A stretch of 63,110 nt of DNA, counting the filler, from Octopus bimaculoides (taxonomy: Eukaryota): the NCBI RefSeq assembly GCF_001194135.2. It is 6 parts of 6 records of this genome, joined end to end, with 100 filler letters (N's around TTAATTAATTAA, not from the genome) between each part and the next. Parts side by side here need not be neighbours in the genome. Positions count along the whole stretch, not along the records: positions 31,592 to 46,024 come from NC_068982.1; 5 more parts are not named here. One strand, written 5' to 3'. The notes beneath the pieces are model-generated. The model made no database searches. It saw nothing but the letters and a program-made list of their open reading frames with translations, and was not told the DNA's origin. A program made the position numbers and the translations under genes. Positions 4,967-46,398 of the stretch are shown piece after piece (the first letter of the stretch is position 1; each line of letters begins with the position of its first letter).

Positions 4967-5151
4967 ATAAGGCAGTGCTGAAAAGTTCCTGGAGGATCAC
5001 TTAACAAGGATTTTATCCAATATATTCCCCTCTCAGATTCAAATGCTTATTGCAGAGGCCCTACAGGATTTCTAAGCCTTGTTAAAGAACTCGGAAGTTT
5101 GGGCCTTTTGTGATACCCTTAAAGCCAGGAACTTTTCAACACTTCCTCGTA
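4967..5151. mobile_element. Mariner-type MITE (~185 bp)
   Basis: TIRs taaggcagtgctgaaaagttcctgg / ccaggaacttttcaacacttcctcgta; a related TIR remnant at ~30310-30345. Confidence 0.75.
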
Positions 5152-5849
5152 AATGCAAATACATATGAATTGTTTTCTGCACACGTATGACATGTTAAAA
5201 GAATCAAAGGAGAAACGATGTTATGGATGTGAAACTAGATATGTGCTATGTACTAGCTGACTATTTTATCGATTACACCAAAGTGCCCCTGAACAACCTA
5301 ACACTTGAAAATTAGTACTTATAAACGCCTTACCGGATAGGCTAACATCGTTTACCTCCACTGATCTCTCAAGAGAATTTGCTTTCCTTGTGTTTGTGTA
5401 TGTGTATATATGTATATATGTGTATATGAATGTATATGTGTACTTGTGAATAGAATTATTATTGCTATTATTCTACACATAACACAATTTCCTATTTTCC
5501 AAAAACAATCTAAAACTATTCAATAAATATAAAAGTTATAGAAATACAATTTTTCCTAAACTGGTTTTAGCTTTTTAACTGTAATATATTTTTACTGTAT
5601 TTTTTTTTTTTTTACATCTAATATAGAATAAAAACAGAAAGAAACGGATGTAAAACGAGGATGGTGATGATGATGATACTAATATCATATTATATTTTAT
5701 TCTATGATATATTTTATATTATATTCTTTATATTATAATACATTTTATATTTTATGGGTTATTCATTTATTCTTCATCTGATCTAAGGGATATATGGTTT
5801 TATGTTGTTTTGCTTTCTTCTTGGTGTTACAACCGCTTCTGATTTCTTA

Positions 5850-7736: not shown

Positions 7737-8145
7737 AGTCTGTGTTTAAGTGTATTTCTACAGATTTTCTATAGAATTTAGTGTCCACATTGAAAGTTAT
7801 GATGTTTCATATACGAATGTGTCTATGTGAACAAGGCTGTCAATGATAGAAATATAGGTGATTGGTGTGTATATACACATTTCAGGAGTTATTGCTATTT
7901 CTTCAGCTCCACATTCAACCCATTAACTATTCACAAATACTTAAATAGCCACTAAGTTTAGCAGTGTAACACAATTTGACAGGCCAATTTACATATTAAA
8001 CACATCCCTAGATAGTGTCAGGTACTGATATATGTATACCACGCTGCCTTGTCTACAGTATATATATATATACATATATATATATATCCACTGTGACAAG
8101 GCAGCGTGGCATTTGATATATATATATATATACATACATACATGC

Positions 8146-31491: not shown

Positions 31492-31647
31492 NNNNNNNNN
31501 NNNNNNNNNNNNNNNNNNNNNNNNNNNNNNNNNNNTTAATTAATTAANNNNNNNNNNNNNNNNNNNNNNNNNNNNNNNNNNNNNNNNNNNNTCTACATTT
31601 GTATTTTGTCCCCTCTGTGTTGAGCCCTGTGTGGCTAATAAAGAAAC

Positions 31648-31717
<70 letters not shown>

Positions 31718-32489
31718 GTCTGTCTGTCTGTCTATCTATCTATCGATATCTCTGTCTCTCTCAATATATATATATATTGGGAATGCAATTGAAGAAAAGT
31801 TAGCAATAGGTTTAGCCTAAAGTTAAGAGCTTTAAAAAGCTGTCAGGAGTTATTGCTATAATCCAACATTATGTAGTCGTTTGGGGAAACTTCGACTTCT
31901 TCATTATTGAACCCTATTAGAACTTAATTAAGCTACGACAATAATTATTTATCATATAATCAAACTTGGCATGCTACCACACGTAGCAAATACGTATGTC
32001 TAGTAGCATGAGATATAGAAACAAGTTGCATTTGCTAGTATTTTGACTAGTATGGCCCTCAGCCATTAATCAAATTTCTCCAATTATACTGAAAAGGTAA
32101 GACAGCGAAAAAGCTTCTACGGGATCACTTATGCGATTCTGACAAGTGTGCTTTGAAACATGGCTCATCTTCAACTACTGTAACGATGACACTCGTAAGT
32201 GTGCAATAACTGCAAAAGAATTCTATGCAGTTGAGATATAGATTCCATAAGGTGCAGCGAAGGGGACCTAAAAAGAAGTGTAATATATTTGACTGAAATT
32301 CTGTGCCGAAAAAAACAGACTTTGGAAGCCATGGCAAAAGCAATCGTCCAGAAGAGGAGCAAAAGCTATGAATAAAACTGACGAGTGTTGAGACTTTAGT
32401 GTTGATAGACAACTTCCCTTCTATTGATATGATAAATTGCACCTATGAGTCTATGGTGTAAACGCTTTGTTGATAGAGCAGCCAAGTAA

Positions 32490-32703
32490 TGGTTTCCAAT
32501 TTTGGCTCAAGGCCATAACTTTGGGGGAGGAGTTAAGTCGATTACATCGACTCCAATGTTCAATTGATACTTACTTCATCGATCCCGAAAGGATGAAAGG
32601 CAAAGTCGACATCGGCGATATTTGAATTTAGAATGTTAAAACGGACGAAATGCTGCTGAGCATTTCGTCCGGCGTGCTAATGATTTTGCCATCTTGTTGC
32701 CTT
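32490..32703 (-). mobile_element. SINE family B
   Basis: gaaaggatgaaaggcaaagtcgac...cggcgtgctaatgattttgcc; possible TSD agagca at 32475 and 32704. Confidence 0.8.
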
Positions 32704-33829
32704 AGAGCAACCCAATTCTAAAACCATGCCCAAATTTATGACAATCTCTAATACAATGAAAGCCCTTTGTGCGCACACAGGACTGGCATTTACAGAGTTA
32801 GAGCTGCATATGATAATGGGGCGATCAAGGAGAACGTCTCCTCTCATCTTCAAGTCATCACAAAATTTTAGCCATGGTACTTTTACTTTCAACCGACAAT
32901 TTGCAAATGCACTCCCAGATACACTCTTCCTGAAAAAAAAAAACCGGGAGTCACAACTCGAGTACTTTTGATCATAAGCTTGTGGTTTTAAAGCTGACCT
33001 GCGCAAAAGAAAAAAAACACCTTTATTGAAGGATGGCTTACGTATAGAGATGCTTGCTTGCTCCGTAGATACAATATAAAATATAATAAAATGACTAGTT
33101 GTTGTCATGGTTTAGTGTTGTTTATCGTTTTTGAGCAGATCTATGGTTAAAACTATTTCAACAGCATTTATCCTCTCTGCCTGTATATCTAGAACTATAT
33201 GGTCTAATATACTCCTCCATTTTGTTTAATGGAAGCGTGTAATTTTAGTAAAATTTGACTGCTATTTCTTGACGGTCGAACCCCAACTTAGAATCTGTCA
33301 CATTAGCTGTTAAAACCATCGATATTTGTAATAAATGAATGCTATCCTGTAATTTCAATTTTTGTTTTAGTGATACTGAAAAAAAACATTGAAATTTGCT
33401 TAAAATTTTAGTAAATTATGTTTTGGGGGAAAATTTTCTGAAAATTTTCAAATATTGATCACTGTACGTAACTAATTATCAAGAAAGAGAAGATGCAAAT
33501 TTGAATATCAGTTTTAAGACTTAATTGAAGGAAATTAATATGTTTGTGTTTCATTTATCTGAAAATTAAAAGCAGCAAATATACACATACATACAAGGTA
33601 AAAATATCGATATATTATCTTTCATTCTTTTATAGCTAGTAGACATGTTTTTACAAAGACTAACACATATAAATGTTATGTTTATATGACTATGTCTGTG
33701 TGTATCTATGTATCTGTGTGTGCGTATGTGCGAGTGTATGGAACAGCTGTTAATTCTTTATGCCTGAATGCGTAAGTATGTTTGTTTACTTGTTTGTGTA
33801 TGCCCGATTGCCACCACCACCACCACAAC

Positions 33830-34075
33830 CATCATCATTTAACGCCCGCTTTCCATGCTGGCAAGGGTTAGACGGTTTGACAGGAACTGGCAAAACAAGG
33901 AGCTGCATCAGATCCCATAGTCAGTTTTAGCTTGACTCCTACAGCTGGATTTCCTTCCTAACGCCAACCACTTCGCAGAGTGTACTGGGTGCCTTTTACG
34001 TGGCACCATTACAAGTGCTTTTTCTGTGGCACCATTACCAGTGTTTTTTTACATGGTACAGCATCAGTGCCCTTC
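33830..34075 (-). mobile_element. Family C element
   Basis: atcatcatttaacgcccgctttccatgctgg...ttccttcctaacgccaaccac. Confidence 0.75.
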
Positions 34076-35443
34076 ATTGACAAACATTACCAAAGTGGTT
34101 TCAGGATACCAATTCTGTTCTGTTCTTTTGAAGTGATCTGTTCATTTTGAATACAGCAGAGTGCCATATACTTGGGTTCTTTGTCATCGCCTTCGTAAGG
34201 CTCGGCGTTTCAACATCAGCCTTCACTACTTCCTGAATCTCCCTCTTCCACAACTTCCATCCATTTTAAGTGATCGGTAACTTTCGATATTTTTAAATGC
34301 AGCATTTATGTGAATAAGTAGGAGAAAGAGAGAAAGAAAACAACAAAACAAGAGAACAAACAAATAAACAATACATACATCTAAAACGCTACAAAAATGT
34401 CAATGTTTTATAAAAAGAAATGTCATATAATGCCTTTTCTCAGTCATTTTGTAAAAACTAGTGTCGTTGAGGATTGAGGCTTTGTTAGTCTGTCACTGGC
34501 TCATCGCATTTTTAATGGAGGAAGTGACAAGAGAATGTCTATGCAACCTGAAAAGTAAATACCACAAAGAATTTTGTGCAACAACACCAGTTTATGCACA
34601 GCTCCTTTGCAAATGTGTCTTTTACCATCACACACACACACACACACACACAGACATTCCCAAAATGCATCAGGCATGAAACTTTTAAGCATGAATTTAA
34701 CAAAGTGCTCAATAGAGTGAGCTTAGCCTAACTATCAACTTGAGGCTATAGCAGAGGACTTTTGCCCAAGTTGACACATATTGAGATCGAATATGGGGTT
34801 CTCAGTTTAATACAATTGTACAAACACTTTGAGAAATTATCATCCATCACAGACATACTGACCAATATCTTGTAAGTTACGTTTGGTACTAGCGAAGTAT
34901 CATTGACATTATAGAATATAATGTGGAGAATAACCATACTGATCGACTCTGTACAGTATTTTCAGGAAATAATATTGCGTTGAGTCAAAAGTTTTGCAAT
35001 TAATTTCTTTCCTTTATTCATCGAGTTACAACAAAAGCGGCCGAGCATTCGAAGTAGAGGCCATCATGTTGTACCACCTTTAATCCCACATTGATATTAG
35101 TTCCTGTTCTTTGATGCAAAGACCTCTTTCACTGAAGCTGAAACCGCCTCTTGGGTGACGAAGCGTCACGAACACAAGTAGTGAACCATGGATTGGAACA
35201 TGTAATAATCCAAAGCAAATATTTTTCTTCAGTCCTAACAAGCATAAGTAGTGGCTAAGCAAGGGCCACCTTCAAGTATCAGTTACCAAACACGGGCCTT
35301 TTGAACACAAAGTAATGCTCTGCGTCTAGTGGGATAATGAAGGCGATAATTCACTACGAGTTCATTCGAACCTGTATTCCAGATAAATGGACTAGATATA
35401 TGCCACTGTGTGCAAAACTAATTGGCATTGGTTAACAGAAAGT

Positions 35444-35659
35444 AATACGACTTTCAGATGCCTGGTCAAGTAGGAGGGCGCCGCGGCGTGCATGGAAGCT
35501 GCGGGCGCGAGCCCGGGTGAAGCCTACCACGGGTGCAGATCTCGGTGGTAGTAGCAAATATTCGAACGAGACCTTCGAAGACCGAAGTGGAGAAAGGTTC
35601 CGTGCTAACGGCGGTCGAGCACGGGCCAGTCGGTCCTAAGAAGCGGGTGAAAGCTTCAA
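35444..35659 (+). rRNA. Isolated 28S (LSU) rRNA fragment, D6-D7a region; a retrocopy, not an rDNA unit
   Basis: agtaggaggg...gggtgcagatctcggtggtagtagcaaatattcgaacgagaccttcgaagaccgaagtggagaaaggttccgtgctaacggcggtcgagcacgggccagtcggtcctaag aligns with the conserved eukaryotic LSU core; GC-rich island in AT-rich DNA. Confidence 0.92.
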
Positions 35660-35881
35660 AAGGCGGCGAGCTGGTAGAAACGTTAGCACGCCGGGCGAAA
35701 TGCTTAGCGGTATTTCGTCTGCTGCTACGTTCTCAGTTCAAATTCCGCCGAGGTCGACTTTGCCTTTCATCCTTTTGGGGTCGATAAATTAAGTACCAGT
35801 TACGCACTGGGGTCGATGTAATCGATTTAATCCCTTGTTTGTCCCCTCTATGTTTAGCCTCTTGTGGGCAGTAAAGAAATA
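35660..35881 (+). mobile_element. SINE family B, full length and young, tail type 1, fused to the 28S fragment
   Basis: aaggcggcgagctggtagaaacgttagcacgccgggcgaaatgc...gtgggcagtaaagaaata. Confidence 0.92.
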
Positions 35882-36818
35882 AGAAAGTGAGGTCTTCTGT
35901 AGCAAGATAATGCAAGACCTTGTGCCACTTGAACAACCCAGAATAAACTCCAGGAACTTGAGGGGATCGAACTGATGCAGCACCCAGCATATAGTCTGAA
36001 CCCAGCTCCCTCGGATTATTATCTATTTGAATCCATGACTCACTTCCTGCGCTCGCAACATTTCATCAATCCAAGTGAAGGTGGTAACTTCAGTGAATGA
36101 GTTCTTCACCTCGAAGGACAAAGACTAGTATTAGCTTGGGATCAAAAGACTGGAAGAACGGTCGCCCCAAATGGAGCAACACGATGGCCTCTACTCTGAA
36201 TGCTAGGCCGCTTTTGTTGTAACTTGACGAACGAAGCAATAAAATATTGCAAAACTTTTGGCTCAACACAATTCACTGCTGTATATTTGAGTATTTTCCA
36301 CAACTTCCTACAGACCAGCAGCGGTTTCAAATGCAGCACCAGAAATTTGCTAAAACAATCATTACTAATAACATTTTCTCTTCATTCTTTACAAGAGTTA
36401 GCTATACATAGTTCACAATACCTTATTATTTAGAAATTGGTCAACGGAGCTAATGAGAGTCATGTCAAAACACCAGACATTACACAAAGGGTATGAGATT
36501 ATTTTGCATAAAAGATGCTATAAAATAAAGACAGATGTCCACTTTCTGTAATCTATTCATTTCCAGAGAAATGATAAGCATGATTTATGGCGATTTCAAT
36601 GACAAGGAAACAGATGATAGTAGAAAGATAACAAAGTTTAGCATCAAAATATTATAGAAAATTACATGTAAGTATTATATAATTCAAAGTAGCAGAAACT
36701 TTACCAATTTCTCATGGAACAAAAGTTGCGAAATGTCTTGGCACATATTTTGAGTTTGAGAAAGAAATATGAAAGTAAAATTAAGATATTTAAAAACATT
36801 TGAACCCAGGTCAAACTA

Positions 36819-36866
<48 letters not shown>

Positions 36867-36967
36867 GAGCACTCACAAATACTCGAACACTCACACACAC
36901 ACATACATAAGAATATGCAAACCTAAACTCTCTCCCTCTCTCTCACGCACACATTTATGTTTTAAGA

Positions 36968-37160
36968 CAACAAGTTAGTAGAATCATTAGCTCATGAGAC
37001 ACAATGCTTAGCACCATATCTTCCAGCTCTTTATGCGCTGAGTTCAAATCCTATCGCAGTCAGTTTTACCTTTCGTTGTTTTATGGTCAAAGTACTGGTG
37101 GTCAAAGTAATCAACTAACGCGACCCCTAAAATTGCTGGCCTTGTGTCAAAAATGAATAG
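36968..37160 (+). mobile_element. SINE family B, diverged
   Basis: gtagaatcattagc...gagttcaaatcc...gctggccttgtgtcaaaaatg. Confidence 0.65.
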
Positions 37161-37210
37161 ATAAAAGCATTTAATTGCAAGAAATATATATAAAAAGAAA
37201 CAACAAAAAC

Positions 37211-37268
<58 letters not shown>

Positions 37269-37373
37269 GCATACATACATGTGTGTGTGAGAGAGAGAAA
37301 GAGAAAGAGAGAGAGAGGGAGTGAGAGAGAGGGGGAGAGAGTGAGAGAGAGAGATAGAGAGAGAGTTTATATA

Positions 37374-37957
37374 TACGAGATCTGATCAATCAGTATCCAG
37401 ACTTGCCAAAGTAATAAAGCTAAACTATGCAGAGTGAAGCCGCTGGGCACAGATTGCGTTTGAAGTCTGTTTCCATGGGCACTAAGTTTCAACGTTCCAG
37501 CTCACTTCCACTGATTTCACCAGTGCTTGGTAGGAAGGTGTGTAGTGTGTGATCGTTTCATTGACAATTACAGAGAAAGTTGTCATGGCAATACTTGCTC
37601 AGAGGCCTACGTAAATTTACAGAAAGTGTATGGAGAGGTGCGTATGAGCCGCACACAAGCGTATGAGTGGTTCAGACATTTCCCAGATGGCCGAAAAATG
37701 TTGATACTGACGAACGTTCTGGAAGTCCTGCAATCAGTAGAACTGAGAAAGACAACGCAAATGTGCGTGCAGCTGTGAGTTGAAAATCGTCGAATCACCA
37801 ACCGTGAGTTATCAGAGGAGGTGCAGATTAGTTACGGTTCAGTTCAGTCCATTATCACAGAAGATTTGGGTATGAAACGCATGTCTGTCAAGTTTGTGCC
37901 AAAACTGCCTTCAGCTGACCAAAATGACACTCAGGTTTCAGTTGCACAAGATCTCCT
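37374..37957 (+). mobile_element. Mariner transposon 5' part (TIR plus HTH region of transposase), cut off by a family A SINE
   Basis: TIR-like tacgagatctgatcaatcagtatccagac; NTCSEAYVNLQKVYGEVRMSRTQAYEWFRHF and ENRRITNRELSEEVQISYGSVQSIITEDLGMKRMSVKFVPKL. Confidence 0.85.
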
Positions 37958-38112
37958 TATTCTTTGTAAGCCTAGTACTTATTCTATCGGTCTCTTTTGC
38001 TGAACCAGTAGGTTACGAGGACGTAAACACACCACCATCGGTTGTCAAGCGATGGTGAGGCGACAAACACAGACACACACACATATATATATATGACGGA
38101 CTTCTTTCAGTT
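37958..38112 (-). mobile_element. SINE family A fragment followed by long (TA)n
   Basis: ttattctttgtaagcctagtacttattctatcgg...gacggacttctttcagtt. Confidence 0.8.
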
Positions 38113-38140
38113 ACACACATATATATGTATATATGCATAT

Positions 38141-38291
<151 letters not shown>

Positions 38292-39540
38292 TACATATAT
38301 TTGTATATATATGCATATTTAATGCATATATGTATATCCATGTATGCATGTGTGTAAAAGCATTATATACATGCTTCTGTACCAAATACATATAAATACA
38401 AGAGCACACATTTATATCTCTACATCATGGCACCTCAATATACACTTCGCTTATAGCTGTGTATTGTGTATAAACATTACTCTATCAGCTCTGCAAACTT
38501 CATTTCCCTTTAAACACATTGATTTTTCCATGCATTGGTAGTAATTGATATCACTTGAGAATTTTAATTTCTTCATATTTTTCAACCTCCTTAAAAGAAT
38601 GTGATAATTATAAAACGATAATAATGCTGATATTTTTATCATGATAATAACGTTGTGTGTTTACTAACAAAGGAAACTGTTTCATATTTCAATTAGAACC
38701 AAAAATAAAATTAAAATATATAAGAATCAAAGTGAAGAGAAATTGCATCATTATTGAATATAAATAGGAATTTACGTAAGTTTTCATAATTCCCTTTAAG
38801 TTTTTGTTTTTTAATCAAAAATTCCTTTCAACATTTCACATTGTTTCCAAATCAATAGCTCGCTTCTTTTATTTGCTAATGATATCTATACATACATATA
38901 CGTTTTGATAATTATATAGCAGTTGATGAGTGGCAAGTTTGCAGATACAATAATGCTGGACTAAATACCTTGCCCTGTATAAGTTTAAAGTCTGCTAGAA
39001 CCAGATTTGATTTAATTCACTGTTTCTTTCCTTGCATAACTTTCCATTGTGATTAGAGAAAAGGAATCAATAATTGTACATTGGTTTAGGAGGAAGGAAT
39101 TGGCAGAGAAAACTAAAATGCCTGATTAAGAGTATTTGGGTATTTACTTTCATCTTTCTATGTTCTGGGTTCTAATCACATCAAGAGTCATTTTGATTTT
39201 CACCGCTCTTTGAAGTCAAATTTTGTCAATAATGGAATGGAATTATTTTGGTAAGAGGACATGTTCACATGTAGCTGATAATTTTATCATGAGAGTAACA
39301 TTGTGTGTTGTCTTTAATTCTCCAGCATGTGTCTGTTTGAAACCTAATCAAAGTAAACCAATTATTTATCAGCATAATGGCCAATGAAGAAGCCTTTAAA
39401 AAATCATTAGACCTACAAGAAATAGAGAACAAATCTTCCTCAAAACTCACCCTACAATTTTATGAAGAGAAAGGCAAACAAATCTTCCTCAAACGTCACC
39501 TTACATTTGACGGATATTTGTCCCCATCTTGTTTGTTGTT

Positions 39541-39586
39541 AACACAATGTTTCGGCTGATATACCCTCCAGCCTTCATCAGGTGTC
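39541..39586 (-). ncRNA. Minimal type I hammerhead ribozyme motif (family 1)
   Basis: gacac CTGATGA a ggctg-gagggtatat-cagcc GAAAC att gtgtt; stem III palindrome ACGT decayed to ACAT. Confidence 0.75.
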
Positions 39587-39691
39587 TTGGGGAAATTTTG
39601 AACCTGGGTTCTCATTCCTAAGGTATTTTTCGATGTTATTATTATAGTTCTATATTTAAGAGATGAGAAAGTATGTACATTATTTTTCCAC

Positions 39692-39737
39692 GATACCTGA
39701 TGAAGGCTGGAGGGTATATAAGCAGAAACGTTGCGTA
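39692..39737 (+). ncRNA. Hammerhead motif (family 1), degenerate
   Basis: gatac CTGATGA a ggctg-gagggtatat-aagca GAAAC GTT gcgta. Confidence 0.65.
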
Positions 39738-40624
39738 AACAACAAACAATATGAGGACAAATATCCATCAAATGTAAATAATGTTATTATCATTATTATT
39801 ATTATTATCATTATTATTATTATTCAGGTCACTACCTGGAATCGAACTCGGAATCTTGGAGTTAATAGCCCGTGTTCTTAACCACTATGCCCTATGCCCG
39901 TGTTTGTTTGTTTCTTCCTTTCCTTTCTTCTTTCATTTTCCTTCCGATCTTATTGATACTTGTCCATGCATTAGATCTTTTTACTTTGACAGACTTGTTT
40001 CAGTTTTATCTACACAGATATAGTTTTTCATGTCCATTGCAAAGATCACAAGCATTTTTTGATGAAATTAATAAAGAAAACGTTATGAAGCTTTAAAGTT
40101 TGCCATCATTTGTAGTTTTAGCCACACAGGTCAACTTCTTCTCAACATCCCATCCAGCAGATGATGCTATCTGTACATGTTCCCAAACAGATGAAACCAT
40201 CTTGGCTCTGGCTTAGAGGTTAAAGGTTATAGCTAGTGTTTGGGGCTGTGTTAGAATTTAATTTAATTAGTTTAGTATCAGAGTTCACGGTTTTCCCATA
40301 ATATTGCCATGTCATGTACAGAATGGATAGATCTGACTGGCTAAAATTACCAAAATTTTCAATCTTTGAATATATAATATTTAATTGATAGCAACAGAAG
40401 CAGTATTAATACCAAAGACAATCTTTATCTTCAGCTCAATGTGGATAAGCCCACTGGCTATTTGTGATATCAGTATCTAAATAGACAATGAAATTCTGTA
40501 TATCGTTGATAGAAGGATTTAGCTGCTATGTTGCTACTAAATATGTGCCATTGAGGAGCCCAAGCAGGGTGAAATTATGTGATCTGGAAGCTCTGGCAAC
40601 TGTAGCAGATGATACTTATCTGTC

Positions 40625-41215
40625 AACGATATGAATACAAGTGTTTTTATGCACCACGAGTTCAAATGAGTTGCGGTAGATTATACAAAGGCGAAACATG
40701 TCGTCCCCTTAAAATAAGAGTAGAGGAACATCGTAAAGCTGTGACACGAGGGGATATTGAAAAATTGGGTATAGCTGATCATGTATGGAAAAATGGAGAC
40801 CACCTCCCCCTGTAGGATGAAGTTAAATTAATAGACGGAGAATACCACTGGAAAATATGAAAACTAAAAGAGGCAGCACATATGCTAGGACACAACAACC
40901 TCCTAAGCAGACTTAGTGCAGATATGAGTAGAATATGGGAACTAGTATTAAGAAAAGATATTAGGTTTATAGGCCCTAAAATTCACTCTATAATTACCTA
41001 CAAGCATATAGCAGGCAGGGACTTGGGAAATAGTGACAACAGAAAAAATGACATCAGCAAAAGGAATACCTTAGGAATGAGAACAGAGGATCCTATTAGT
41101 CAAATAAAGGGTTGGATTCAAAATTTCACCAGAACACCTGATGAAGGCTGGAGAGTACATCAGCTGAAACATTGTGGTAGCAACAAACAAGGTGAGGACA
41201 CCTATCCGTCCATTG
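40625..41215 (+). mobile_element. Penelope-like element 3' part: GIY-YIG endonuclease reading into an HHR-containing pseudo-LTR
   Basis: SCGRLYKGETCRPLKIRVEEHRKAVTRGDIEKLGIADHVWKNGDHLPL*DEVKLIDGEYHWKI*KLKEAAHM; the same frame continues to NTLGMRT...TPDEGWRVHQLKHCGSNKQGEDTYPS across the HHR. Confidence 0.88.
41133..41178 (+). ncRNA. Hammerhead motif in the Penelope tail
   Basis: aacac CTGATGA a ggctg-gagagtacat-cagct GAAAC att gtggt. Confidence 0.7.
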
Positions 41216-41246
41216 TACTATATTTTTTGATGTTAGATAGATTTTA

Positions 41247-41439
41247 CAGTTCTATATTTAAGAGATGAGGAATTATGTACATTATTTACATTTGATGGAT
41301 ATTTGTCCTCATCTTGTTTGTTGTTAACACTACATTTCGGCTGATATACCCTACAGCCTTCATCAGGTGTCTTGGAGAAATTTTGAACTTGGATTCTTAT
41401 TCCTAAGGTATTTTTCAATGTTATTATTATTATTATTAC

Positions 41440-41491
<52 letters not shown>

Positions 41492-41618
41492 GTTATTATT
41501 ATTATTATTATTATCATTAGTATTTTCTTTTCTTTTCTTTTTTTCAGGTCACTGCCTGGAATCGAACTCGGAATCGTGGGGTTACTAACCTGTGCTCTTA
41601 ACCAGTACATCATATGCC
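41247..41618 (-). mobile_element. tRNA-head/(TAA)n/hammerhead SINE, full length, tail-to-tail with the Penelope fragment
   Basis: Head ggcatatgatgtactggttaagagc...gagttcgattccaggcagtgacctga, (TAA)n, body, HHR at 41371-41326, 3' end ...cttaaatatagaactgta. Confidence 0.9.
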
Positions 41619-43397
41619 TGTGTTTTGCATATTGTGGACATCATGTTCATTGCTGACTAAATTCTATCCAATAAAGTAAAATAAAGATGAGAGCTCCCAT
41701 GGTAGTATACATATATTGCATAGTACACAGTAAAGGATGTATTGTAAAGTTTGGAGTCCAATGGATGTCAGAAAATATTTCACTTCTGAACAAACACCTA
41801 CCATGCACAATAAAGTATTGCTCAGATATGAAAACTTCTTCCATTATTACACACTTTTAATCCGACCTAAACGAAACTCATCAGTCAGATAAATAAATCT
41901 TCACTATGTTGCTGTGGAGTGTTGTAATTGTCTTTGTAACGATGGATCTTCTTGTATACCATTTCTTTTACCTTCATCTATCTTCCCCTACTCTCAAAGA
42001 GAAGAACTTTTCCATTTAGAACTTGTAATATCTTGGAAACTCTTCATGGAGTCACAAATATTTCTCTCCTTTATCAAAAGATCAACATTTATCATATTAA
42101 TCTTATCTAAAAGTCCTTTCTAGACAAAGAAGACATAAAAAAGTCCATGGACACTTTCCTTCCTCTCATACGTAAGCTACAAAAGAAATCCATTATATTT
42201 CATATTCTAAAAATTGTAGGATTTTTCTTTTAAAGTTCAAACAGTAGATTTAATCAAAAAATATTATCAACTATGAAAAGAAGAGAAGTATAATTTTACC
42301 GTAGAAAAATAAATAGTGCGTAGTATTGTTCATTCTTTCACAAGCATCATTTGAAATGTAAGTGAATCATTTTAACTGCAAATCTAAAGCACATCATGGA
42401 TTCAGTAGATTATGAATTGACCATTGTGACGTCAGCTATCATGATGCCTGTCACCGGTAAAAGAAGACAATGTAAACAGAATATTAACATCAGCAAAGCT
42501 GTATACTGAATCAATATTTCCTGATAGGAATCCCCTAAACTACACTTGATTACATTATATAGTTGTATAATTTCAAAACAGGCTCCTTTCTGTCTATCCA
42601 CTGAATTTATAATTCATCAAATTATTGCAGTGTTTCATATTTATGATATATATGGAATGCTCTTTCTTTTCCTATGATGTGGTCCTGATGCAGTGATGCA
42701 GTCCAACCATCTATCATTAGAATATTATCTTGTAAAGATTTATCTTTACAACAAGAATAAAGAAAATGAAGAAAAATTGCCAGACTTTTGTACTGGATAA
42801 TTTTTTACTTATTTTTGTTATTTTACGTTTCTCCAATCAGTAAGTTGTGGCCATGCTGGGTCACTGCCATCATATGAAAATAAATTTTTTTTAGAAAGCG
42901 GAAATGATAATTCTTTTGTTTTTAAAAGGTCTTAATACTGATTTCCATTGAACAAATATAAACCAACTTCAGTGGAGAAAAAATATAATGAATAAACGAA
43001 TCCAATTGTAATGCAGGTATTTAATTTATTGATTGTCGAAGGACAAAAGATAAAAATTAACCTGTTTTAATCCTGAAATCCAAAAATATAGCTGGGAAAA
43101 AGTATAAGGCTGAAATGCATTCCACTATTTCTGCTAACTTACCTCTCTAAGTTCAAGGAGTCCTTTAAAGTGTAGCATGATCTGGTAGAAATAGTAGACA
43201 AATTTCCCTCAAATCATACCTTGCTGTCTCAAAGGAATACAAATAAACATTATATAATGTATTTTTGCATATACTCTTTGAGACAAAATCTGGGACAGCC
43301 ACAACTCTAGCAACTTTCATCATAAGTCTGTTCATTGACCTGAGTGAAAACATCTCACAATTCACTGCTCGAATGTTTTTTTAATATGACTCCTTAT

Positions 43398-44032
43398 TAA
43401 GGTGGCGGAATGTTAGCATGCTTAGCGAAATGCTTAGCAGTATTTCATCTGTCTTTACGTTTTGAGTTCAAATTCTGCCAAGGTCATCTTCGCCTTTCGT
43501 CCTTTTGAGGTCAATAAATTAAGTACCAGTTGCGTACTGGGGTCGATCTAATCGACTGGTCCCCTCCTCAAAATTTCTGGGCCTTGTGCCTAGAGTAGAA
43601 GAGAAGCGTTAGCTCGCTGGGTGAAATGCTTAGCAGTATTTCATCTGTCTTTACTGTCTGAGTTCAAATTCCGCTGAGGTCGACTTAGCCTTTCAAGGTC
43701 AATAAATTAAGTACCAGTTGCGTACTGGTGTCGATGAGATCAGCTTAGCCTTTCATCCTTTCGAGGTCAATAAATTAAGTACCACTTGTGTACTGGAGTC
43801 GATCTAATCGACTGGCCCACTCCCCAAATATTTCAGGCCTCATACCTAGAGTAGAAAAGAAACGTTAGCACGCTGGGTGAAATGCTTAGCGGTACTTTGT
43901 CTGTCTTTACATTTCAAATTAGCTTTTCATCCTTTCGAGGTCAATAAATTAAATACTAGTTGCGTACTGGAGTCAATCTAATCGACTGGTCCCTTCCCCC
44001 AAAATTTTGGGTCTTGTGCCTAAAGTAGAAAA
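43398..44032 (+). mobile_element. Head-to-tail trimer of SINE family B (tail type 2) inside one TSD
   Basis: Three units ending tagagtagaa/taaagtagaa; flanks aatatgactccttat (43383-43397) and aatatgattccttat (44033-44047). Confidence 0.8.
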
Positions 44033-44193
44033 AATATGATTCCTTATCACTAGACGAAAGAGATTCAGATTTACAGGTGAATAAATGAAGTGTAGTAACA
44101 TTCAAGCTTTTCCCATGTATGTGATAATCAGAAATAAAACAAAGTAACTTCTAATGGCATTCGAAACTCTGCTTCATAAACATCAGCTTATAA

Positions 44194-44392
44194 CTCGGTT
44201 TCAAATTTTGGTACAAGACCAGCAATTTGGTGGGTGAGGAGGTAAGTTAATTACATTGACCCAGTGTTAAACTGGTACTTATTTTATCGACCCTGAAAGG
44301 ACGGAAAATAAAGTCGACCTTGGTAGAATTTGAACTCAGAATGTAAAAGCAGAAAGAACACCACTAAGCATTCTGCCAGCTCCCTGCCTTAT
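44194..44392 (-). mobile_element. SINE family B with 12-bp TSD
   Basis: TSD atcagcttataa at 44182-44193 and 44393-44404. Confidence 0.85.
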
Positions 44393-44916
44393 ATCAGCTT
44401 ATAATTTACAATTTAATCTTTCTCAGAACAAATATTTATATATTTATACTAATTTCTTGAATTATGAAAAAAAAAAACAAAAAAAAAACAGAAATGCGAT
44501 GAAATTAATGAATTATTTAATTGGTTTTATTTTTATCTGAAAACTCTAATTTCCTTCAATATCAAAAGTAACTGGGTACAACTTGTTAGTTCAATATGTT
44601 CGGAGTTTTGAAACAAGGTGAAAACACTAATTAGGGAATAATCTTATTTATTAGCAATAGACATCGATTATCTTAATGATATTCCAACTACAGAATTTGC
44701 AGAGAATCTTAAAGGTTAATCTGTTTGTCATATTGCTTATGCCTTTCATCAGAGTTAATACTGCAAAAAAAAAAAAAAGGAGAAAACTAGTAAATAGTAA
44801 CAAGTCCTTCTCAATGGAGTTAAAGACCAGTTATGATATATTAGAATTTAAATCTTAAGGCATGGTTTCTTCATAGCAATATACTAAATATTACTTTAAA
44901 CCTGATTTTAGTTTTT

Positions 44917-45017
44917 ACAGTTCTATATTTGAGAGATGAGGAATTATGTACATTATTTATATTATTTACAATATTTACATTCGACAGATATTTGTCCCCA
45001 TCTTGTTTGTTGTTAAC
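44917..45017 (-). mobile_element. Inverted 3'-tail fragment of the hammerhead SINE
   Basis: tacagttctatatttgagagatgaggaattatgtac...tttgtccccatcttgtttgttgttaac is the reverse complement of the element's last ~100 nt and abuts the head of the next copy. Confidence 0.85.
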
Positions 45018-45018
45018 A

Positions 45019-45088
45019 GGCATATGGTGTAGTAGTTAAGAGTGCGGGCTACTAACCCCAAGATTCTGAGTTCGATTCCGGGCAGTGA

Positions 45089-45156
<68 letters not shown>

Positions 45157-45303
45157 TCGAAAAATACTTTAGGAATGAGAACCCAGGTTCGAAATTTCCC
45201 CAAGACACCTGATGAAGGCTGGAGGGTATATTTGCTGAAAGGTTGTGTTAAGAACAAACAAGATGAGGACAAAAATCCGTCAAATGTAAATCATGTAAAT
45301 AAT
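45019..45303 (+). mobile_element. tRNA-head/(TAA)n/hammerhead SINE, clearest copy
   Basis: A box TGGTGTAGTAG, anticodon-like loop CT-ACT-AA, B box GAGTTCGATTCC (45019-45093); (TAA)n to 45153; body; HHR 45204-45249 gacac CTGATGA a ggctg..ttgct GAAA g gtt gtgtt. Confidence 0.9.
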
Positions 45304-45564
45304 GATTTTCGTTTGAATTCTAACTTAAAAAAGAAAACAGTTGTATATAATTGGCACTGATTTTTCGGAGTTGTCATTCCCTATTGCTATCAAATATACT
45401 TGATTAATATGTAATATATATGCATGTAGGAAGGAATGTATTTATGCATAGCTGTGCCTTTTTCTGAGTTTATATATGGAACATATGCCAGTGGATATAT
45501 ATATGTATATATANNNNNNNNNNTATTGCTGACATGGCCGATGACAGTTCCGCCTGATTAGCAC

Positions 45565-46013
45565 TCGTGCCAGTGGAACATTAAAAGCACCATCCAAATG
45601 TGATCGTTGCCAGGGCGCTGATAGGCTCCTATGCTAGTAGCACGTACAAAGCACCATTCAAGCGTGATCGTTGCTAGTGTTGCCTTACTTAGCACATGAG
45701 CCGGTAGCATGTGAAAAACAACATTTGAGCGTGATCGTTGCCAGTGCCGAAGGACTGGCTCCCGTGCAGGTGGCACGTAAAAAACACCTTTTGAGTGTGG
45801 TCGTTGCCAGTACCAACTGACTGGCCCTCATGTCAGTGGGACGTAAAAGCACCCACTACAATCTCGGAGTGGTTGGCGTTAGGAAGGGCATCCAGCTGTA
45901 GAAACTCTGCCATATCAGACTGGAGCCTGGTGCAGCCTTTTGGCTTGCCAGTCCTCTGTCAACCCATGCTAGCATGGAAAGCAGATGTTAAACGACGATG
46001 ATGATGATGATGC
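45565..46013 (+). mobile_element. Family C element with 4-5 tandem 5' modules
   Basis: Repeated gtgatcgttgccag modules, aggaagggcatccagctgtagaaac core, gttaaacgacgatgatgatg tail. Confidence 0.85.
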
Positions 46014-46398
46014 ATATATATATANNNNNNNNNNNNNNNNNNNNNNNNNNNNNNNNNNNNNNNNNNNNTTAATTAATTAANNNNNNNNNNNNNNNNNNNN
46101 NNNNNNNNNNNNNNNNNNNNNNNNTATATATATATATATATGCTTGTGTGCATGTTTGCGAATGTGTGGCGTTTGTTTGTGTATGGTGTGCGTTTACGTG
46201 TATTTGTGTCTGCACGCTGACGAGTGAGTGTATGCCCACTACAGACGCGTTCTTCTCGTTTTCTCTGTTTTTCAGGAAATAGCATCAGCCTTTTCTAGCG
46301 TGTTCGTATATTAATGAACATTTTGTTGCGTTTGAGTCCTCTGGTGGTCAGATTCCCTCGAAAGCATTTCATCCACAAGATGCTGTGTCTAAGCGTAC

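Follow-up and report, generated by a model that had tools for sequence, protein, structure and literature searches.

A short octopus repeat with a tRNA-like head and a hammerhead motif as the probable terminal module of a Penelope-like element

The window analysed here, a stretch of 63,110 nucleotides (nt, filler included) joined from six parts of the Octopus bimaculoides assembly GCF_001194135.2, contains in its part from NC_068982.1 (positions 31,592 to 46,024) a short repeat that consists of a head resembling a transfer RNA (tRNA), a (TAA)n spacer and a body with a hammerhead ribozyme motif. The repeat had been predicted, from a copy at 45019-45303 and three other loci, to be a short interspersed element (SINE) that is mobilised by a Penelope-like element (PLE) and possibly gives rise to circular RNAs. 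Our analysis finds three copies with the order head, (TAA)n and body, together with further partial copies, in this part of the window, and the module that they represent is homologous to, and contiguous with, remnants of a PLE open reading frame (ORF).

A blastn search of this part of the window with copy B (41640..41230, minus strand) as query returned a sense copy with head, spacer and body at 45016-45303 (copy C), a head alone at 39905..39773, body matches at 39645..39501, 39685..39642 and 39682-39784, a diverged body at 41117-41217 and an inverted tail fragment at 45018..44909. The short copies measure 290-390 bp, and their sense strands are free of any TTTT run, as had been noted for the consensus. 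Copy B proceeds from its head (41623..41543) through an A-rich tract with (TAA)n, the body and the hammerhead (41371..41326) to a tail that ends at 41245. In copy C the remnant of the ORF start stops at the short-form 3' terminus, ~120 nt past the ATG, and the copy is preceded by an inverted partial copy that extends from just past the predicted cleavage site to the end of the tail; the ~40-nt tail (...TATAGAACTGTA) of this inverted copy lies at its outer end, and its other end adjoins the head of the sense copy. The locus at 39503-39899, originally taken for a single unit, turned out to be one copy (A) that is interrupted by a nested insertion X, itself composed of an inverted tail-only fragment (39643-39685) and a 5'-truncated sense copy (39682-39780) with a decayed hammerhead at 39692-39737, in which GAAACGTT is kept. 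Just past the 3' end of copy A lies a 32-nt direct repeat, AACAAATCTTCCTCAAAACTCACCCTACAATT, at 39428-39508 (88% identical, spacing 49 nt).

The link to a PLE is visible in the window itself. A 5'-truncated copy of a PLE ORF (40630-40960) runs straight into a further hammerhead copy, D, whose head-like remnant GCATATAG..CAGGCAGGGACTTG has lost the tRNA-like middle, whose body holds a 27-nt insert and which is devoid of (TAA)n; its hammerhead (41133-41178) reads AACAC-CTGATGA-A-GGCTG..CAGCT-GAAA-CATT-GTGGT, and it stops at the short-form 3' end. At the O. vulgaris locus L011 the end of the same ORF is followed by ~65 nt of untranslated region (UTR), a full tRNA-like head, a spacer rich in TAA, and then body and hammerhead, an order which identifies the supposed SINE as the PLE's own pseudo-long terminal repeat (pseudo-LTR). 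Body identity between the short copies and the 3' ends of ORF-linked PLE copies is 82-83%. The ORF fragment in the window is 55% identical (E 2e-37) to residues 749-850 of an 861-residue protein, P0164, with RVT_1 at residues 387-592, and its close relatives include one O. vulgaris protein. A profile search collected 3651 relatives, of which the long ones match by their C-terminal ~130 residues and have RVT_1 upstream. Among 25 relatives, 13 have an upstream RVT_1 and three have a sub-threshold Pfam GIY-YIG match at the matched region (E about 1e-3); their alignment shows YVDD and the consensus IY.IPC.CG..YIGET.R..R..EH. A profile search of PDB matched reverse transcriptases, telomerase reverse transcriptase among them, and a PDB sequence search with the window fragment gave no match. 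The canonical architecture of endonuclease-bearing PLEs places a GIY-YIG endonuclease C-terminal to the reverse transcriptase (PMC8557442).

Because the element is open in one sense frame, its translations were aligned and a protein collection was searched; exact-pattern DNA scans of metagenome, viral and prokaryote genome collections had 0 matches. The protein matches comprised an O. bimaculoides 'uncharacterized protein', a dystrobrevin-beta isoform model and six short ORFs on Logan contigs (contig DNA labelled L001-L010). One common ATG, at 45175 in copy C, opens all recovered short ORFs. In the diverged copies L006 and L010 a head, or what remains of it, is again joined by a TAA-rich spacer to a body, and a degenerate (TAA)n spacer is found in both as well as in the PLE-linked copy L011a. 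A consensus peptide, MRTQVRNFPKTPDEGWRVYQPKRCVNNKQDEDKYPSNVNNV, aligns to residues 22-53 of P0164 (E 1e-4). Judged by this alignment, the open frame (MRTQVRNFPKTPDEGWRV...) is the N-terminus of the PLE ORF, and the full-length octopus ORF is predicted to start with MRTQVRNFPKTPDEGW.... The hammerhead is embedded in frame in this ORF start, with TPDEG encoded by ACACCUGAUGAAGGC. The unit is not a tRNA head joined to a foreign PLE tail and instead corresponds as a whole to a PLE pseudo-LTR plus the first 120-156 nt of the ORF. In the dystrobrevin model (P0006, O. bimaculoides 'dystrobrevin beta isoform X1', GCA_001194135.2) the N-terminal ~33 residues, MPMGIWHSG-EGWRVYQPKCCVNNKQDEDKYPSK, are element-derived, being translated from the head and hammerhead region of an element copy; this N-terminus is either an exonisation or an annotation artefact.

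The ends of the units coincide with positions at which PLE reverse transcription is known to begin. Counted from the ATG, the cleavage site (predicted between GAAACGUU and G) lies at +70, the short-form ends fall at ~+115 to +122, and the optional tail of ~40 nt ends at +156. In PAc, a PLE of Anolis, reverse transcription starts at two sites, 111-118 nt into the ORF, and the sequence between the two start sites forms an optional tail of 30-40 bp (PMC11167929). The 9-bp terminal stem and the 3' end AATATAGAACTGTA, originally regarded as constant features, belong to this optional tail, which is present in copy B and absent from the sense copy at 45019-45302; the 3'-end motif at 44915-44930 is on the opposite strand, inside the inverted partial copy that adjoins the head. 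The 9-bp inverted repeat is confined to tail-bearing copies, where it flanks the short-form 3' end on both sides, and by analogy it may be the counterpart of the stem-loop at which reverse transcription of the Anolis PLE starts (PMC11167929).

The anatomy of the insertions is likewise of PLE type. Inverted 5'-truncated partners are found at locus C, L001, L006, L011a, L011b and insertion X, the tail is present at a single end only, and duplications of 12 bp (11/12 positions) and 10 bp flank whole composite units; the target of insertion X was a microsatellite (ATT/TAA). An inverted upstream partner copy, a one-end tail and a microsatellite or ATT target are hallmarks of PLEs (PMC8557442, PMC11167929), and the inverted-partner architecture of the locus C type has been depicted for them (PMC8557442 fig. 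2). The predicted mobilisation by a PLE instead of a long interspersed element (LINE) is therefore borne out by ORF-linked copies with the same module, by the insertions and by 3' ends at PLE reverse-transcription starts. The suggestion that all inverted fragments start at the cleavage site was rejected: only the one at locus C does so within 1-2 nt, and the others start 8, 9 and 42 nt beyond it. The head-to-head joints at L011 12060-12125 and L006 22-168 form a near-perfect palindrome, GCTATGCCCAC joined to GGGCATATGGC; at the L011 joint one arm lacks the middle of the head and the other retains only its first 12 nt before (TAA)n.

Table 1. Positions of the repeat copies, their parts and the linked PLE sequences; coordinates are those of the window unless a locus label is given.
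Feature	Position	Strand	Basis or remark
Locus C, left target-site duplication TGATTTTAGTTT	44903..44914	.	11/12 positions identical to 45303-45314
Locus C, inverted 5'-truncated partial copy	44915..45018	-	blastn to copy B 312-403, 78% identity; alignment
Copy C, tRNA-like head, 76 nt	45019..45094	+	A-box-like TGGTGTAGTAG, 7-nt loop CTACTAA, B-box-like GAGTTCGATTCC
Copy C, (TAA)n spacer, inside the element	45095..45154	+	sequence reading
Copy C, PLE ORF-start remnant	45175..45302	+	ATG 45175, frame MRTQVRNFPKTPDEGWRV...; no tail
Copy C, degenerate minimal hammerhead	45204..45249	+	predicted cleavage before 45245
Locus C, right target-site duplication TGATTTTCGTTT	45303..45314	.	pairs with 44903..44914
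Locus C, whole	44915-45302		inverted 5'-truncated copy, tail outermost, then full tailless sense copy; flanks TGATTTT[A/C]GTTT, 11/12
Copy B, most complete short copy	41245..41623	-	blastn, relaxed hammerhead descriptor
Copy B, 9-bp inverted repeat AGATGAGGA / TCCTCATCT	41263..41314	-	arms 41263-41271, 41306-41314
Copy A, 5' part: head (39903..39823) and (TAA)n	39791..39903	-	blastn, sequence
Nested insertion X, in the (TAA)n/body junction of copy A	39643..39780	+	blastn, flank analysis; 10-bp duplication ATGTTATTAT at 39633-39642 and 39781-39790
Copy A, 3' part (A2): body, hammerhead 39586..39541 (GAAACATT)	39501..39632	-	short-form 3' end, no tail
Copy A, whole locus	39501-39903	-	single copy interrupted by insertion X; X flanked by ATGTTATTAT
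Decayed C-terminal endonuclease part of PLE ORF (...SCGRLYKGETCRPLKIRVEEHRKAV...IWELVLRKD)	40630..40960	+	stops in frame at 40813, 40858
3' UTR (pseudo-LTR) of that PLE, with diverged copy D (41040-41219)	40961..41219	+	body 82% identical to copy B
L001, L011a			built like locus C; flanks with no more than possible 7-bp repeats: GATAAAT (L001), TAATTTT (L011a)
L006, L011b			head-to-head inverted pairs; L011b flanks: only (TTA)n microsatellite matches
L013, module/hammerhead regions	2361-2510, 5021-5245, 7779-7960		each ORF start with ACGU-type minimal hammerhead

The hammerhead string of the original prediction is reproduced exactly by the consensus of 10-11 copies, AAGACAC-CTGATGA-A-GGCTG(GAGGGTATAT)CAGCC-GAAA-CGTT-GTGTT, and the five window copies align without gaps across the motif. 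As far as its sequence goes, this consensus is of the minimal PLE type, in which a 5-bp helix I and a bulged base before helix II are combined with a palindromic ACGU that replaces helix III (PMC4209133); helix II in the octopus has 5-6 bp. Under a strict descriptor (5-bp helix I, 6-bp helix II, ACGU and H17 = U) the consensus qualifies, as does one fully intact copy (O. vulgaris L011 11925..11878), so that the minimal type I assignment stands for these two, whereas no copy in the window, the one at 45019-45303 included, is intact. A relaxed minimal-hammerhead descriptor matches copies B and A2 in the window, where chance would provide 0.0097 loci per first-order shuffle of the piece. The motif of copy C, GACAC-CTGATGA-A-GGCTG(GAGGGTATAT)TTGCT-GAAA-GGTT-GTGTT, fails relaxed and strict descriptors alike; the 3' strand of its helix II is TTGCT, and GAAAGGTT stands in place of GAAACGTT. 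The catalytic core CTGATGA plus GAAA is retained in the 11-copy consensus, and the only core change found in more than one copy is at the unconstrained N7 (T to C in L005, L006 and L010), all others being private to single copies. At the helix III position CGTT is kept in insertion X, L004, L005, L011a and L011b; the variants CATT, TGTA and TGTT would be the expected products of CpG decay from it. Across 11 copies 86% of the helix cells are paired, compared with at most 50% in slid controls, helix II contains two compensatory pairs, and the minimum-free-energy fold of the monomer includes helices I and II.

With +1 set at the base preceding GGCAT, a register read from the sequence, 16 tRNA positions are in place (U8, G10, A14, R15, G18, A21, Y32, U33, R37, G53, T54, T55, C56, R57, A58 and C61). 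The acceptor and T stems do not pair, while the box-like motifs are retained, a combination that fits a promoter rather than a folded tRNA. The predicted tRNA-like head thus holds as far as the boxes, the 7-nt loop and the register are concerned and fails with ARAGORN and Rfam; it can be called tRNA-derived only by box and register criteria that the tRNA finders do not accept. A single ARAGORN call at the 70% threshold, in copy C and with undetermined anticodon, was judged spurious. Seven copies (B, A, C, L006f, L001 and both L011b arms) share the 5' start GGGCATATGG, a few bases at most from tRNA position +1; in eight further fragments the truncation points are dispersed, falling in the endonuclease region or at copy B positions 260, 312, 320, 321 and 354. 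In the variants L001 and L011b the A-box/B-box part is missing, and the 5' terminus GGGCATATGGC is still present. The ORF-plus-UTR part of the PLE has no match in the flanks of the short copies and matches only copy D, L004 and L012, and an extension of copy B upstream into the PLE UTR was ruled out by BLAST at E<=1.

A related organisation is found in a second PLE lineage. L013 (ENA ERZ25068762), the source of P0164, is a tandem PLE array with a period of 2709 nt and intact 861-residue ORFs, and in each 123-nt inter-ORF spacer lies a tRNA-like module whose B box is perfect. The order is that of the octopus element: tRNA-like module, ATG and an in-frame ACGU-type hammerhead, here AACAC-CTGATGA-C-GGCCGG(8 nt)CTGGTC-GAAA-CGTC-GTGTG, in the same frame (TPDDG). 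The residues encoded over helix II differ (GWRVYQP in the octopus, GRRSNWS in L013) while both retain the helix II pairing, bulge, GAAA, ACGU and helix I, which argues for constraint at the RNA level. Compared with shuffled controls, the similarity of octopus and L013 modules is higher in 4/5 heads (z 2.3-5.6; L006r reaches z 0.8); they have a mismatched T-stem in common, and their 3' parts are identical at 17/21 positions. The tandem pseudo-LTR arrangement seen in L013 was absent from the sampled octopus loci, each of them truncated at its 5' end. No tRNA-like module is present in a third PLE lineage, L014, and the module is thus not universal in PLEs. The 3' UTR of L014 (2735-2775) contains a hammerhead-like string whose core is broken, TCCT-TTGAAAA-C-GGCAGC(5 nt)GCTGCC-GAAA-CGTC-AGGA.

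We consider it likely that an octopus PLE of the endonuclease-bearing kind has this repeat as its terminal module and that the short copies arose by retroposition of an RNA starting at the tRNA-like module. The terminal module would comprise a degenerate tRNA-derived segment with A- and B-box-like motifs, (TAA)n and the PLE ORF start, and would end at the internal reverse-transcription starts of the PLE, ~120 nt past the ATG or, where the tail is copied, ~156 nt past it. The reverse transcriptase and GIY-YIG endonuclease of the PLE would copy and insert the RNA that begins at the head. The insertions are of PLE-type anatomy and seven copies have a discrete 5' end; taken together with the kept boxes and the lack of TTTT, this end favours initiation at the tRNA-like module, most likely by RNA polymerase III (Pol III) through the A and B boxes. 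Such initiation by Pol III at the head would make the short form SINE-like; the label 'SINE' is defensible only in a qualified sense. In tandem arrays of the parent PLE the hammerhead may work as a ribozyme, either as a dimer or with the help of protein, and in the short copies it would be a passenger.

Several results weigh against this interpretation. None of the window copies passes the strict descriptor with the ACGT palindrome, each having at least one ribozyme defect, and the covariation of the hammerhead is not significant (104/500 shuffles reach the observed value). The Rfam search proposed in the original prediction gave no match at E<=10 to Hammerhead_1, Hammerhead_3, HH9, HH10 or Hammerhead_II, whether the whole piece, stretches of 81-2451 nt, the Logan loci, the intact L011 copy or L013 were searched; this failure is expected because the motif has no helix III, for which a custom descriptor was needed earlier (PMC4209133). 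ARAGORN found no tRNA gene in the window, L006 or L010-L013, and nothing when run on the heads alone with the score threshold lowered to 80% of the default; the Rfam tRNA model had no match at E<=10 in the whole piece, sub-regions, Logan loci, the intact L011 copy or L013. On the protein side the GIY-YIG matches of the relatives remain under the curated cutoff, Pfam does not match the window ORF fragment, and the AlphaFold model of the endonuclease fragment is unusable, with a predicted local distance difference test score (pLDDT) of 46. The sample comprises ~15 copies from more than one octopod source, and the Pol III and cleavage readings are drawn from sequence only. If the octopus PLE, by analogy with PAc, binds its protein through RNA downstream of the start site, which the short copies lack, these could not propagate themselves; their sources would then be the loci that keep the ORF start.

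Other explanations of the repeat are to be considered. The short copies might be by-products of RNA polymerase II (Pol II) transcripts of the PLE, that is 'solo pseudo-LTRs' that form no independent SINE lineage and owe nothing to Pol III; the RNA would start in the pseudo-LTR, and the reverse transcriptase would enter at the 5'-proximal start site just past the hammerhead. We regard this as unlikely, if deserving serious consideration. In its favour, the ORF-bearing copies hold the identical module, PLE transcripts are reported to begin in the upstream pseudo-LTR (PMC6765202), and the GGGCATATGGC terminus is kept in L001 and L011b without the box part. The Anolis PLE, moreover, starts internally and needs uncopied RNA 3' of the start (PMC11167929), in which case short copies would be dead on arrival. 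However, the shared 5' end is the +1 position of a tRNA-derived module, which for a Pol II start would be a coincidence, and the boxes were kept while the stems decayed, the B box being perfect in L013. The lack of TTTT in the sense strands also speaks against a Pol II by-product, weakly, as the copies are homologous.

A strict metazoan retrozyme, in which a tandem transcript is cut by the hammerhead, circularised by tRNA ligase and reverse-transcribed from circles, appears improbable, although a type I hammerhead with palindromic ACGU is typical of dimer cleavers (PMC4209133, PMC7229834), a unit of 290-390 nt is within the size range of retrozymes, and a 2026 preprint derives retrozymes from PLE pseudo-LTRs (10.64898/2026.07.22.740005). 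Head-to-tail tandem units are present at none of the ~9 loci (window and L001-L011), where only inverted pairs and nested copies occur, and the suggested circular RNAs find no support here. A hammerhead without helix III needs tandem units to dimerise. Cleavage of a monomer would separate the 5' part from the reverse-transcriptase entry site, which counts against a retrozyme; the unit ends are the head and the reverse-transcription starts and not the cleavage site, near which just one inverted fragment starts. Insertion of the Anolis PLE does without cleavage, and no cleaved RNAs were seen (PMC11167929). It is more improbable still that the repeat is a classical LINE-mobilised tRNA SINE with a hammerhead-like string due to chance or coding. 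Such an origin would fit the tRNA-like head, the small size and abundance, and the unmatched Rfam hammerhead models, and conservation of a motif that lies in a reading frame could be partly at the protein level. Against it stand the chance expectation given above, the differing residues and kept RNA features of octopus and L013, the missing poly(A) or LINE-type tail and the contiguity with PLE ORF remnants in two genomes. The insertions, finally, have PLE-specific inverted partners and tails; to our knowledge, LINE-driven SINE insertion does not yield inverted partners, a one-end tail or a microsatellite target.

Beyond the origin of the short copies in a PLE end, we put forward as a tentative proposal, somewhat short of an even chance, that a PLE lineage carries in its pseudo-LTR a conserved tRNA-derived module, present in the octopus and, as a homologue, in the unrelated array L013, that acts as a Pol III promoter and drives short sub-genomic RNAs, which the PLE enzyme copies from its internal starts. 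If this is true, the PLE's own end gave rise to a SINE-PLE partnership, in which hammerhead SINEs of the Sm-alpha type and animal retrozymes would find a common origin. Should the module contain a working Pol III promoter, it would provide the first route from a PLE to SINE-like offspring to be described, and it would link PLE hammerheads, Schistosoma hammerhead SINEs and animal retrozymes, which have so far been treated separately. The octopus copies mirror the internal starts and the tail measured in vitro for the Anolis PLE, which provides independent genomic support for that mechanism from a distant phylum. The open frame of the element also seeds spurious or exonised gene models in octopus annotations. 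According to a recent repeat annotation, SINEs constitute 11.6% of the O. vulgaris genome and 893/900 recently active SINE families are unclassified (PMC13282606); recognising one SINE family as a detached PLE end gives such repeats a parent and a mobilisation mechanism.

Further repeats were noticed in the window. At 35470-35860 a fragment of 28S ribosomal RNA (rRNA; Rfam LSU_rRNA_eukarya, 65.7 bits, E 8.7e-14) is fused to another tRNA-like repeat, which is abundant (...GAGTTCAAATTCCGCCGAGGTCGACTTTGCCTTTCATCC...) and whose other copies at 32528-32703, 43409-43555, 43605-43751 and 44260-44377 lack the rRNA part; the locus has the appearance of a chimeric rRNA-SINE retrocopy. At 45554-45831, CTGATTAGCACTCGTGCCAGTGGAACATTAAAAGCACCATCCAAATGTGATCGTTGCCAG and its variants (68-73% identical) form an array of four tandem units, each 64-67 nt long. 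Between 43481 and 44084 a 174-nt unit is present in three direct copies (85% and 67% identical to the first), two of them adjacent, which overlap with the other SINE family. Long microsatellites of (TATC)n, (TA)n, (GA)n and (CA)n at 31638-31817, 37200-37370 and 38070-38400 are the source of all spurious Rfam microRNA matches.

Much of what is seen here has counterparts in known systems: PLE pseudo-LTR hammerheads, the anatomy of PLE insertions, PLE-derived retrozymes and Schistosoma SINEs with a Pol III promoter and a hammerhead have all been described. The octopus element resembles the PLE pseudo-LTR hammerheads (PMC4209133), including Anolis PAc (PMC11167929), in its type I motif with a 5-bp helix I, an unpaired base 5' of helix II and a palindromic ACGU instead of a real helix III, in the position of this motif at the junction of pseudo-LTR and ORF, where it overlaps the ORF start, and in dual motifs on opposite strands 100-700 bp apart. 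As in PAc, the unit has its 3' end ~115 nt into the ORF and a ~40-nt optional tail. Unlike the Schistosoma PLE families, with a helix II of 7-8 bp, the octopus element, known from sequence alone, has 5-6 bp, and unlike the described PLE pseudo-LTRs it adds an upstream tRNA-derived module and (TAA)n.

Metazoan non-LTR retrozymes are similarly short, non-coding, hammerhead-bearing and of similar size, and have been proposed to be non-autonomous derivatives of PLE pseudo-LTRs (PMC7229834; 10.64898/2026.07.22.740005). Tandem arrays and circular RNA define the retrozymes, whereas in the octopus the copies are scattered as single units or arranged in inverted pairs, and each unit ends at the head and the reverse-transcription start site. 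Sm-alpha and Sj-alpha of Schistosoma, as summarised in PMC6765202, are also short retroposons that combine a Pol III-type promoter with a type I hammerhead; that of Sm-alpha is canonical and efficient, with loop-loop contacts and tandem copies, whereas the octopus motif is of the minimal PLE type. By the account of PMC6765202, no ORF-bearing parent of Sm-alpha with the same promoter module has been described, and the octopus parent PLE has the whole module. The eel pair UnaSINE1 and UnaL2 (cited in PMC10886601) offers another parallel, as a short element shares its 3' reverse-transcriptase entry site with an autonomous element of the same genome. There the partner is a LINE, while in the octopus it is a PLE with a telomerase-like reverse transcriptase and a GIY-YIG endonuclease; moreover, in contrast to classical SINE-LINE pairs, the entire element is shared, priming is internal with two ends, and inverted partner copies are formed. 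The recent O. vulgaris repeat annotation (PMC13282606) makes no mention of hammerheads, nor, in its SINE or Penelope passages, of a SINE-Penelope partnership, and in the searchable literature, judged by titles and abstracts, we found no report that PLE pseudo-LTRs contain a tRNA-derived module as a conserved constituent. The related tRNA-like module in a second PLE lineage, L013, is the most novel point of our comparison.

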